From assembly GCA_011109175.1 (NCBI GenBank), contig RDEW01000007.1:867712-900711 (forward strand): a DNA stretch of 33,000 nt. The letters are read 5' to 3'. Position 1 is the stretch's first letter, and the number at the start of each line of letters is the position of its first letter. This document shows positions 246 through 4,949 of this stretch, in pieces. The stretch is from Dicyema japonicum. Taxonomy: Eukaryota; Animalia; Dicyemida. A program made the translations under genes and the position numbers. Below the pieces are notes generated by a model that made no database searches, was not told the DNA's origin, and saw only the letters and a program-made list of their open reading frames with translations.

Positions 246-370
246 AGAGGTCGGTTGTCTAGTTTTTGACCTTTGCCCGAGTTCTTTAACATTTTAGAGA
301 GGTCGGGTGTCTAGTTTTTGACCTTTGAGTCGACAATCTTCTAAAATGTTGAAGAACTCGGGTAAAGGTC
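246..370. repeat. Overlapping 30-bp direct repeat and 31-bp inverted repeat
   Basis: agaggtcgg(t/g)tgtctagtttttgacctttg occurs at 246-275 and 298-327. Segment 268-298 is the reverse complement of 340-370 with 2 mismatches. Confidence 0.9.
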
Positions 371-435
371 GTCTGGCCTCAGGTGGACTAAGGATTATAG
401 ACAAATTAACGAAGTACAATTCCTAATTTTAACTA

Positions 436-808
436 ATGGAGGTTCCCTTCTTTCAAAGACAGTGCTCTGGGTCGGCTTGTGGATATGTCTGTCCAATTCT
501 TGATAGTCAACACGGAGAGAGGACGCGATGTTCAGATGCGAATGAACAGATCACTAAAATAAAGAATATCACTCAGGTGGAAAGACAGATAACCCAACGA
601 GTCAATAAGGAGTATGGATTGAAAATATCCCCTAATATACGTGTACAGAATAAAATCAAAGTTTTTATCGTTGGTTAGAAACACGGAAAATGGAGTCGAA
701 GTCCGTGGGCATGTCTCTATGAGATCACATACTACGGTAAATTGTGTCCTGTGGTACATAGGGGGGCTATAAGTACAAGATCACATGAGAGTGCTTAATA
801 ATAATAAT
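436..808 (+). mobile_element. Decayed 3' fragment of an RTE-like LINE with (TAA)n tail
   Basis: Degenerate post-RT peptides, including a GHVS remnant of the RW-GHV-R motif near 705-720. Ends in ttaataataataatca at about 795-810. Confidence 0.4.
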
Positions 809-814
809 CATTGA

Positions 815-2330
815 TTAGACAAAAGTGTTTTGCAGTCTACAAAATCTATTGAAATTTGTAAATTTTATTTCGCTCTCATTGCCACTCATCCACGAGTTTT
901 CTTTTGAGGCTTGCAAGTTCGAGATCACCCCACTCAGATTCTCATAATTCATCGAATTTATTCTAAAAAATTACAAATTAGTACGTAGAAATTGAATTTT
1001 CGTGAGAAAGATTAGAACCTCCCCACTAAGCATAAAAACGAACAGTACATTCGAAACGGACTTAAAAATGTAGCATTTTAGAAACGATATATTCTCAGCC
1101 TCCTTCGTCAGCATGCAGTACCTGTCGGTCCCAAAGTCCAGAATGACCCTGTTCTGGGAGCATCCGTACTTTGTGATAATGTTAATCGGCCACTCGTATT
1201 TTATCTGATTGTTCGTCTTCATTATTCTCACGAAATTTTTGGTGATCGACAGCATCCTGTATATCAGCTTTCCGTGTTTCACGTTTATTTCCTGGAAACG
1301 TTATTTTAGCCAGACTTTAACGGCAAAGTAGGTTGCCCCGAAAAACGCCTTGCTCTGACACTCAATAATGTACTCAGACTTGATGGTGTGAGGATCGGAT
1401 CCCCTCAGCAACTTGTATTGGTCGACAATTTTATTCTTGTGCTTCTTGTAGATCTCCGGGAGATACATTCTAATAGGACATAAATTTACTTGATCGATTC
1501 GTGGTAGTCCCCCAGGTTTATATGGCAGTGAAAAGCCGCCAGTTTTACAAGAGTAATGCCGTCCACCGACGCGGTCCCAGAAACGACATCATTAGAGATC
1601 TAGGATGTCACAATTATAGCCACGTGGTCGTAGAGAATGTCTATTTCAATCGAACTGCTTGGAATGTAGCCATTCAGGTAAAGACGTCGCTCCAGCATGA
1701 GGGTCTCATTGGGACCAACATCCTGATCAGGAAGGGTCAGATTCCCATCAATCCACGTGACTGAATATTCGTAAATTTAAGTCACCATCATTTCCAAGAT
1801 TCAGTCTGTTGAACTTAGTTTTTTTATTTTTGAAAATTTCGTAATTTTCTGCGGTTTTTTCTTTCATCAAAAAAAATTCTTTGAAATTTTTGATTCCTTA
1901 AATAAAATCAAGTCCAACCAACATTCCTGCAGAACGAGGCAACAATGAACTCCGCCGACTGACTGCAAGCATATTCAACGGTAGTAAGGGTCCCAATCCT
2001 CATTTTGATCTTAACAAGTCGCAGATTGTATTTGTACTCAAGAACACTCTATTTTAACCAAAAAGGCAAACTGATGTCTCGTCATTCAGGTAGAAGCCAA
2101 TTTTTTTGTGTGGCTGGAACCAAATCTCCTTGCCTTGGAGATGGTCGTGGATCATTAAACTGTATTCACCTGGGAATCATTCGGAAAATACTTTCTGAGA
2201 GAATCCTCAACTTTCTAACATTGGCTCGCAAAGTATCAATGACTCCTGAAACTGACATTTTGTACAATATATTGATCTTCTCATATGAGGTTGTTCCATT
2301 CACAGTGACCTTTATTTCAATTGTAGGCAT
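815..2330 (-). CDS. TLN: Talin-like FERM protein, head only (F0-F1-F2-F3 plus ~60 aa tail), ~436 aa, 9 micro-introns
   Basis: Removing GT-AG introns 2170-2191, 2049-2071, 1897-1918, 1761-1785, 1600-1623, 1470-1489, 1292-1315, 1026-1048 and 963-984 gives a 1311-nt open frame. Translation: MPTIEIKVTVNG...EIWFQPHKKIGFY...LEYKYNLRLVKIKMRIG...WIDGNLTLPDQDVGPNETLMLERRLY...LAAFHCHINLG...FFGATYFAVK...YEWPINIITKY...ILDFG...TKEAENISFL. This is colinear with the talin head as I recall it (WLDHGRTLREQGVEEHETLLLRRKF; YGVSFFLVK; EWNLTNIKRW; TLDFG; TEGEQIAQL). The last two introns are less certain. Confidence 0.85.
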
Positions 2331-3371
2331 TCTGATGGTTAAGCGGCTAATTTAATGGTTTATTATGTTTGATAAGAAGTCAACCTTCTTATTTAATTAA
2401 TATTTTTAAATTTAAATATAAAACAAATAAATTAATTTGATTTAAATTACATTTATTTGAGGTTTGTTAATTGATTTTTGTGTTAATAAAATTGTTAGTT
2501 AATAAAATATGATTTGCAATTTAACGATTTTATGTCCTCAAATTAGATATTCTGCCAAATCAATTGATGCATTAATGAATCTTTTAACTCAATTTTTCGC
2601 AATTCTCTGTACTTTTATTTTAACTGATATTGAAATTTTTCGTTTTGTGGTTATGATGGTGAAGCCCAGTTGCCCAGTTTTCTGTGCAAAGTTGAGCTGC
2701 TGACGTAGCTATATACACTTAATGTCCCCATTGATGAAACTGGATATAACTTCTTCCGCTTTTTAATGGACTCACGAGAAACTGGAAACCTGAGTGTTGA
2801 AACACTGAACCGTCGTATGCGCCAATGTCTGGGTTCGAATCCATGGCCCATGGAACGTGAGTTAGTCTGCCTTTAGGGAATGAGGGATTTATGAATTACC
2901 AGTGGCGAACTTTTCTTACACAGCTGTTTAAAATTATTGACCGCAAAAAATTTCAAATATAATTTATCAAATTAAGTAGAAAATTTCAACCAGTAATGAC
3001 AGGAAGTCGTGGGACTACTCTTGGATCACCTACATAACTCTAATGGTTTCCGCAGGATCACTTCACGGCGGAATCTAGTAGAAGTTAAGTTAGGTCACTC
3101 TTAATCTTTAGGTTGTAAGTAGGACAACGACACATCGGCAGTGATTTCGAGCGATTTCGACCCCCCACCATATACTTTTTTCAAAATCTTTGTAAAATAC
3201 GAGATATCTTTCAACAGGACACTTCAAATGCCTTTTTATGGATTATTCAGCATTAAATTGGGTGGATAATTTTGTGGTCACTGTAACGGTAACCTTACCC
3301 TAGGATCTTTATTCAACTAGATGCGACTTTATATGACCGACAATGTAATAGATGCTGGATGCAAAGGCTCA

Positions 3372-3600
3372 TTTATTTTATTTATTTAACCCCAAGACCA
3401 CCAGGAAAGATTGGTCAAAACTAACTAAATAGGTGATCTCAGTTTCCAACAACATCCGAACTCAGAAAACTGGGGAGTTGGTAGGCCACCCTTCTGAAGA
3501 TCGCAGAAAGGTAGGGAAAGTTCCATGCAGAACTTGCACTGATCGCCACCACAAAAACAGGTGAACCGCATGACGCCACGTTTTAAAATTACAAAGGCTC
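3372..3600 (-). mobile_element. LINE 3'-end remnant, same family as 5345-5905 and 6265-6772
   Basis: Reverse complement ends gagatcacctatttagttagttttgacc...gtggtcttggggttaaataaataaa, which matches the 3' end of the copy at about 6710-6770. Confidence 0.55.
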
Positions 3601-4949
3601 ATGAGTGGGGTAAGTTGTTTCGAGGACTTAAAAAATGTATTAGCGCTAAAAATTATTAAATATAGCATCTAAATAATAAAATCTAGTAAAAATATTTATT
3701 TATTTAGAGATAGATAGAATAAATAATAAAATTATTCCAAAGATCAAGGGTAAAACCAAATTGACTAACTCCTTGATCCTACACGTTCCAGCGATTCCAA
3801 AACAAATAACACAATTGTCTCCTGGTGGAAAAAATTTACAAATTAAAGAATCTTATTTATTATAATAAAATTTAATGTTTAACATTATTTTTATAAAGTT
3901 CCTATAATTTTTAAATATTAAGAATTTTAATAATTATTTATAAAGATGAAGAGGATGCTTGCCGTTGTGACAAAACAAGATGATCCTTATTGCGAATTTT
4001 TTTCTCAGCCATCTCAACAATATTTTTAAATTTATTTTGTTCCATTTTTCTATGTAATTCTTAATATCCGCCTTTTCATTTTCAAAATATAGTCATTGGA
4101 TATGCGATTAATTGAGTATTCGCACCATTTCGATGTTTGAAGAAGATCCATTATTTTTGACGAACCAACTTCCCCATAAATTAAATAAGGAGAATAGTGA
4201 CTACTACATCCGGGGATATCCAATATCCTCAAGCAAACTACGACGTGTGCGGTTTTAACTGTAGCAGCTTTAATGCTTGACATCTATTTTCTGATGTGCC
4301 ACTTTATGCGTAGAATAATATTATTTGATAAAGGAGAATATCGATTATTGTACATCACCATCAGTTTTTTACCAGAAATCACGTAAGGTGTAAGAAATTA
4401 GGTGTATATTGCATGATTTGAATTTCTCTTATTACGTCGTCTATCAAAAATGATAGCAACAGTAGCGTGAGTGTTTACACTACACTTTTTTTATTTTTTA
4501 TGTGGGAGTAATTATACTTGTGCATGCAAATTCAGAAGAATATTGAATGTTTTAAACATTTTCTTGACGCAATCATAACTTGTGAAAGGAAGCTTTCGCA
4601 ACAGCTTCTGCGATTGTTTCTTTAAGTGAGGATAGTTCAGTTGTTTTAGCTAAAGTAGTTTGTACTGCCCTGGTTATCTAAAATTGATTCACAGTTATAC
4701 TAAATTCCTTTGATGTTTTAAGATTGAAAGATGAGAATCAACCGGAAATTTTGTAGAACAGTTATAAGCAAATATATTGATTTCCATCATCGGTAGTGCA
4801 GATTTCATTTTTGAATAGAGACTATACTTCTAGCTTTTTTAAGAGTGAACACCAGGTTTGGCATAACTAGAGAGATTTTTAACTAGTGTGGTAAATAATT
4901 CGATTATTTTTTATGTTTGACACTTTGTTTGTTTCACTCACTGTTGAGA

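Follow-up and report, generated by a model that had tools for sequence, protein, structure and literature searches.

Full-length talin is a protein of ~2,500 aa that occurs in animals, amoebae and many unicellular eukaryotes, and it is viewed as a universal force-bearing coupler that links adhesion receptors to actin. The talin head is familiar as the fragment that is released by calpain, and we know of no natural talin gene that encodes the head only. Kindlins likewise comprise F0 to F3 with an F1 loop and bind the tails of beta integrins. A natural stand-alone piece of talin has been described in TLNRD1 (bioRxiv 10.1101/2020.05.19.103606), and according to a 2025 study, force coupling through the rod has been conserved between amoebae and mammals (PMC12686525).

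Here, we describe a gene of the dicyemid Dicyema japonicum that we read, with a probability of roughly 60%, as the sole talin gene of this species, with its rod lost, encoding 384-436 aa with the lobes F0-F1-F2-F3 and a short tail. The gene lies near the start of the window, by which we mean the whole 33,000-nt stretch of DNA that was analysed (GCA_011109175.1, contig RDEW01000007.1, 867,712 to 900,711); positions below refer to the window unless other coordinates are named. The source assembly contains 67,542,437 bases in 377 contigs, and the GC content of the window is 37%. The D. japonicum genome as published has 67.5 Mb in 377 scaffolds, a GC content of 36.7%, a mean intron length of 38 bp and 49% repeats (PMC6736024), and introns with a length below 30 bp are a known trait of this species (PMC13644364).

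The gene is positioned ~870 kb into a 1.74-Mb contig and is read from the minus strand, with the sure exons extending from 2330 to about 1062. Neither the window nor the 10 kb downstream of the gene contains any N letters. The start codon ATG is located at 2330-2328 (minus strand), with an in-frame stop eight codons upstream. Splicing of exons 1 to 8 (E1-E8) at seven GT-AG introns, which measure 22, 23, 22, 25, 24, 20 and 24 nt from 5' to 3', produces a single open frame of ~370 codons. The features of the locus are listed below.

2192..2330, minus strand: exon 1, the start codon and first half of F0; assigned by position and by eye, with no family match of its own
2072..2169, minus strand: exon 2, the second half of F0, after a 22-nt GT-AG intron (2191-2170); weak FERM_f0 match
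1919..2048, minus strand: exon 3, the first part of F1, assigned by position only, after a 23-nt intron (2071-2049); codon log-odds 0.27
1786..1896, minus strand: exon 4, the lysine-rich F1 loop, between introns 1918-1897 and 1785-1761; 8 Lys in 36 residues
1624..1760, minus strand: exon 5, the end of F1 and start of F2; weak PDB matches, all talin
1490..1599, minus strand: exon 6, the first helices of F2; FERM_M match
1316..1469, minus strand: exon 7, the remainder of F2, probably followed by the first F3 strand; FERM_M match
1062..1291, minus strand: exon 8, the F3 PTB lobe as far as the last helix; tentative 3' edge (1062, 1058 or 1049)
963..1061, minus strand: T-rich stretch, read as one 99-nt intron, as 23/32/36-nt and 22-nt introns around a 41-nt exon, or as retained, with stops at 973-971 and 980-978
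957..962, minus strand: AATAAA, a possible poly(A) signal just past the early stops
815..962, minus strand: candidate last exon, 48 codons open in the tail frame, with TAA at 817-815; A-rich like the exons

The coding potential of the exons was assessed with codon-usage log-odds (LLR), for which 1,734 codons taken from elsewhere among the genes of the genome served as the training set. E1-E8 score 0.13-0.31 per codon, compared with a median of 0.04 and a 95th percentile of 0.147 for random windows, and the proposed frame is the best frame in all eight.

The identity of the head was derived from exons searched one at a time (Pfam, PDB sequences and a protein language model), and the joined translation served for frames and stops only. 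E8 matches the Pfam IRS-type PTB family with 24.6 bits, over the cut-off, and its best 24 matches among PDB sequences (phmmer) are all talin-1 or talin-2 chains, with a top E of 1.5e-5 and alignment to talin-2 residues 141-209 and 328-396 (F3). The protein-language-model search with E8 likewise returns IRS-type PTB clusters with a score of 0.93. F2 is covered by two exons that match Pfam FERM_M, E6 at positions 20-52 of 112 (E 0.0056) and E7 at positions 72-112 of 112 (24.5 bits, over the cut-off). By these matches, F2 and F3 are talin-type FERM lobes. The matches of the exons ahead of them are weak: E2 aligns with positions 44-70 of the 81 in Pfam FERM_f0 (E 0.14, 12.9 bits), and all 13 PDB matches of E5 are talin chains aligned around talin-2 residues 177-220, the F1/F2 boundary (E 0.18). 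E1, E3 and E4 have no family match of their own, E3 drew no usable match in the language-model search, and nothing useful was found for E1, E2, E3, E6 and E7 among PDB sequences. The E2 and E5 matches, taken with position, suggest that F0 and F1 are present, and the Pfam and PDB matches along the exons fall in talin lobe order with a spacing that fits. The proposal of the earlier note that F0, F1, F2 and F3 stand in one intact spliced frame is thus upheld by the seven introns and the open frame, with matches above cut-off for F2 and F3 and weak ones for F0 and F1.

Two other FERM identities were considered and rejected. A kindlin would carry a PH insert in F2, which is absent here, and no kindlin chain appears among the PDB matches of E8 or E5 up to E 10. 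An ERM or band 4.1 protein does not fit the ~200 residues (E1-E5) that stand ahead of F2, nor an F3 that matches talin only, with no ERM chain among the PDB matches of E8 up to E 10.

The F3 lobe is ~37% identical to that of human talin-2, as counted from the E8 alignment. In its pocket, the Lys-Leu pair before the second strand is kept, which we take to be K324/L325 of talin. The Lys-Arg-Trp of talin is replaced by Thr-Lys-Tyr, as the earlier note had read and as is visible in the HMMER alignment of E8; Arg-Trp presumably corresponds to R358/W359 in talin-1 numbering. At the level of sequence, these are conservative changes. The F1 loop and F2 presumably are shorter than those of human talin-1. 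A large phmmer search with the F3 exon returned no talin at E <=0.001 and no copy of the gene; its sole match is a spurious repeat protein (DUF6688, scramblase-like repeats).

Downstream of the last F3 helix, which ends in CYIF, the DNA is T-rich from 1061 to 963 and A-rich from 962 to 818. The T fraction of the former stretch (0.44) is close to that of the seven sure introns (0.39), compared with 0.26 in the exons. Eight splice combinations were tried at this 3' end, and all eight stop 15-67 residues past F3, which gives products of 384-436 aa. When two short introns are removed, the first of 23 or 32 nt and the second of 22 nt, the frame runs to the stop at 817-815 with 433-436 aa and the C-terminus TFV, and a single in-frame 99-nt intron (1061-963) leads to the same stop with 418 aa. 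With no further intron, the product has 399 aa and ends at 973-971; when the first of the two short introns alone is removed, it has 386-389 aa and ends at 980-978 or 973-971; and the 36-nt variant combined with the 22-nt intron gives 384 aa with a stop at 960-958. Even when the TAA at 817-815 is skipped via a possible 27-nt intron, a new stop follows nine codons on. The earlier note had stated that alternative splice choices also stop nearby, and the stop at 973-971 with the last introns retained agrees with this.

Its account of the tail itself stands in part. The frame is open to the TAA at 817-815 and ends in TFV as described, but the tail of ~60 residues is one of eight readings and has non-coding-like codon usage. 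It is open for 62 codons; given that stops occur locally at 0.058 per codon, the chance of this is ~2.5%. The LLR of the two-exon version (E9+E10) is 0.07, near the non-coding median of 0.04, and its frame is not the best of the three; the candidate last exon at 815..962 scores 0.08 in the tail frame, the middle one of the three frames. The retained-intron tail reaches 0.17 over 30 codons only and is hydrophobic (Kyte-Doolittle up to 1.95), a property that translated T-rich intron sequence shows as well. Because the tail lacks codon-usage support, the TFV "PDZ ligand" is a guess that is tied to one splice model. AATAAA was also considered as a marker of the 3' end; it occurs at 0.0018 per base in the region and is found at 5 of 35 ORFs against a background of ~8%, and it is uninformative.

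The assembly is intact across the locus. Four sequencing runs from one sample contain 0.90-0.92 of the words, introns included, which marks them as DNA-like, and independent Logan contigs from these runs cross the gene and its 3' end unbroken. Their spans are 881-4808, 786-4900 and 249-4808 in the coordinates of the extended locus L005 (window = L005 - 1500). The earlier note had asked for read support here, and the unbroken spans leave no misassembly at about 810. Farther out, at L005:341-721 (about -1159 to -779 in window coordinates), sample and reference disagree at no fewer than 20 positions in 380 nt, far above the surroundings, and at L005 232/249 the contigs carry ~209 other letters in place of 16; the divergent stretch near L005 232-721 probably represents either a haplotype that has diverged or one copy of a repeat. 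Between these and the gene, ~450 nt downstream of the latter, two repeats interleave at window positions 246-370, one direct (30 nt, 246-275 and 298-327, 97% identical) and one inverted (31 nt, 268-298 and 340-370, 94% complementary), and together they resemble a small repeat element.

No rod was found at the locus. From 815 to 3 kb past the window start, all three frames of the same strand are closed repeatedly, and none of the ORFs that reach 70 aa within 10 kb downstream is helical, alanine-rich or rod-like; some of them are retroelement-like, and repeats are also present. With every splice reading stopping near F3 and no N letters in this 10 kb, the description of the gene in the earlier note as a talin head with no rod is confirmed for the locus. 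The search was extended to the whole assembly with six-frame, exon-wise scans of Pfam models. Talin_middle, VBS, Talin_IBS2B, Talin_R4 and TLN1-like_RS gave no first-look candidate genome-wide, and the sole candidate for I_LWEQ (PF01608), on contig C1 with E 1.18, is a transposon-like ORF and was rejected. A genome check with Talin_middle, VBS and I_LWEQ had been suggested in the earlier note; neither a rod gene nor a full-length talin was found. As a control, the spectrin repeat gave eight matches (best 30.8 bits), so the method sees helical repeats. The Vinculin family, which covers alpha-catenin, is silent genome-wide. This silence may reflect loss or low sensitivity. Dicyemids are reported with adherens junctions and 18 cadherin-domain genes.

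The scans also indicate how far such silence reaches. The FERM_M scan finds the gene at 22.1 bits (E7, C345:869036-869161) and the IRS PTB scan finds it at 23.3 bits, and the FERM_f0 scan misses it, which is a limit of the method. With F3 at ~37% identity and F0 missed, a rod as diverged as the head could be missed when exons are scanned singly with HMMs. Of the two explanations in the earlier note, the first, a split talin whose rod is a separate, strongly diverged gene elsewhere, with products that work jointly or independently, gains from this divergence: the large search with F3 reached no talin either, an equally diverged rod could pass unseen through all six Pfam scans, and a rod-only protein does exist in vertebrates in the form of TLNRD1. 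Against these points, the six rod families yield nothing save the transposon-like ORF, in an assembly where the helical spectrin control matches eight times. The split gene did not emerge from the genome, and we consider it unlikely, although it is the best placed of the alternatives to a lost rod.

Somewhat less likely still is a decaying relic, in which a talin gene was cut by a transposon or deletion and its non-functional head has not yet degraded. Half of the genome consists of repeats, repeat and retroelement-like ORFs lie downstream of the gene, and the integrin tail described below has no canonical talin-binding motif, all of which would suit such a history. However, the ~370 codons remain open over eight exons and every splice site is intact, each exon has coding-like codon usage, and no rod remnants were found. 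The differences between sample and reference inside the gene, all in E8, are three in number and are either synonymous (1111 and 1121) or in frame (a 3-nt insertion at 1079 that adds one Leu), whereas four of the five indels nearest the gene in the flanks are 1 or 2 nt long. With three variant events, this is modest evidence of purifying selection on the gene.

A gene that continues is improbable. It would have to reach rod exons more than 10 kb downstream through a rare long intron, or have exons too diverged to recognise, and the eight options for the 3' end leave some room for this. The mean intron of the genome, at 38 bp, and the seven sure introns of 20-25 nt speak against a long intron, the next same-strand ORFs downstream are neither helical nor rod-like, and no rod family matches on the same contig.

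The second explanation of the earlier note, a head-only paralogue beside a normal full-length talin, is very improbable and was not borne out, given that no rod family matches in the genome scans, that the IRS PTB scan yields no more than this gene, a DOK-like gene and the latter's degenerate copy, and that the seven other FERM_M loci show no similarity to the exons of the gene (tblastn, all E above 0.2). The two further IRS PTB matches were rejected as talins: the one on C317 (L003:4120-4780) belongs to a DOK-like gene with PH and PTB domains, and the one on C235 (L004:4350-5060, minus strand) to a near copy of that gene with frame breaks. Both adjoin similar retroelement-like ORFs. By eye, the other FERM loci are of the band 4.1, ERM and myosin-FERM types; they include a MyTH4-FERM myosin on C18 (L009, G000:C18:36000-45000), an ERM-like gene with a coiled coil on C168 (L014) and band 4.1/FRMD-like genes, with L008 on C13 among the loci viewed, and no kindlin-like locus is evident by eye among the eight FERM_M loci. 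Since neither a second talin-type F3 nor a full-length talin was found, the gene is, as far as these sequence scans reach, the only talin-like gene of the genome and not a paralogue.

The presumed partner of the head is also present in the genome. Dicyemids are reported to retain one integrin alpha and one integrin beta but neither most matrix genes nor the laminin and collagen IV signature domains (PMC6543705). The beta-integrin gene is located on C57 (L007:2940-3200, about 311,940-312,200) and encodes a transmembrane helix followed by a 61-residue tail; AATAAA is found within a few bases past its stop codon. The tail gives no Pfam Integrin_b_cyt match and lacks NPxY; a single Trp and a single NxxY (Asn-Gly-Thr-Tyr) are present. 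Judged from the tail and the F3 pocket, both sides of the classical talin-integrin contact are altered. A complex prediction for the F3 exon with the integrin beta tail scored 0.00, which weighs neither for nor against binding. Talin in dicyemids is not mentioned in the literature searched, and the supplements of the dicyemid genome papers contain no tables of talin, FERM, vinculin or integrin genes.

If the gene is the rodless talin that we favour, the head would sit on the inner face of the membrane via the lysine-rich F1 loop and lysines in F2 and F3, and the PTB pocket of F3 would hold the single beta integrin by its cytoplasmic tail. The product, in the absence of a rod, would bind neither vinculin nor actin, would not dimerise and would not be autoinhibited; the loss of these links and of autoinhibition would make it a constitutive membrane and integrin adaptor rather than a force-bearing link. 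Such an adaptor fits an animal in which laminin and collagen IV signature domains are reported absent. We further propose, tentatively and at less than even odds, that dicyemids as a group have no talin rod and perhaps no vinculin, and that their single integrin is served by a free-standing talin head. If true, this would be an animal integrin with no talin-based mechanical link to actin, a state that could arise once the basement membrane and force-bearing adhesion to matrix had been lost.

A head-only animal gene would amount to an evolutionary "truncation experiment", which would reveal the talin functions that are kept when matrix adhesion and force transmission are gone. Candidates are binding to the membrane and to the integrin tail, and perhaps the activation of integrin. 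Such a gene would further reveal how an integrin tail co-evolves with the head, here with a tail devoid of NPxY facing a pocket with Lys-Tyr in place of Arg-Trp. Gene and domain loss is expected in the dicyemid lineage, and the case would be a concrete addition to the domain losses catalogued for extremely reduced parasites. Should the rod instead be encoded by a diverged gene of its own, the finding would reduce to an unusual gene split.

Compared with the known systems, the dicyemid gene is distinct from each in a different respect. Kindlins carry a PH domain inside F2, whereas the dicyemid F2 (E6+E7, ~90 residues) has no insert and is interrupted at the DNA level by a 20-nt intron. TLNRD1 is the mirror case, with rod bundles and no head, and it exists beside full-length talins. 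Full-length talin has the head in common with the dicyemid gene; its rod bundles R1-R13, the vinculin-binding sites, the autoinhibitory R9 and the I/LWEQ (THATCH) actin-binding and dimerisation domain are neither present at the dicyemid locus nor detectable in the genome. The closest counterpart is the head of talin-1 and talin-2 (residues 1-400), which shares the IRS-type PTB of F3, the Lys-Leu pair of the activation loop and probably also the lobe order F0-F1-F2-F3 and the lysine-rich F1 loop. The NPxY pocket of the talin-1/2 head has Arg-Trp, whereas that of the dicyemid head has Lys-Tyr in an F3 with ~37% identity, and the talin-1/2 head is a cleavage product, whereas the dicyemid head would be the whole product of its gene.
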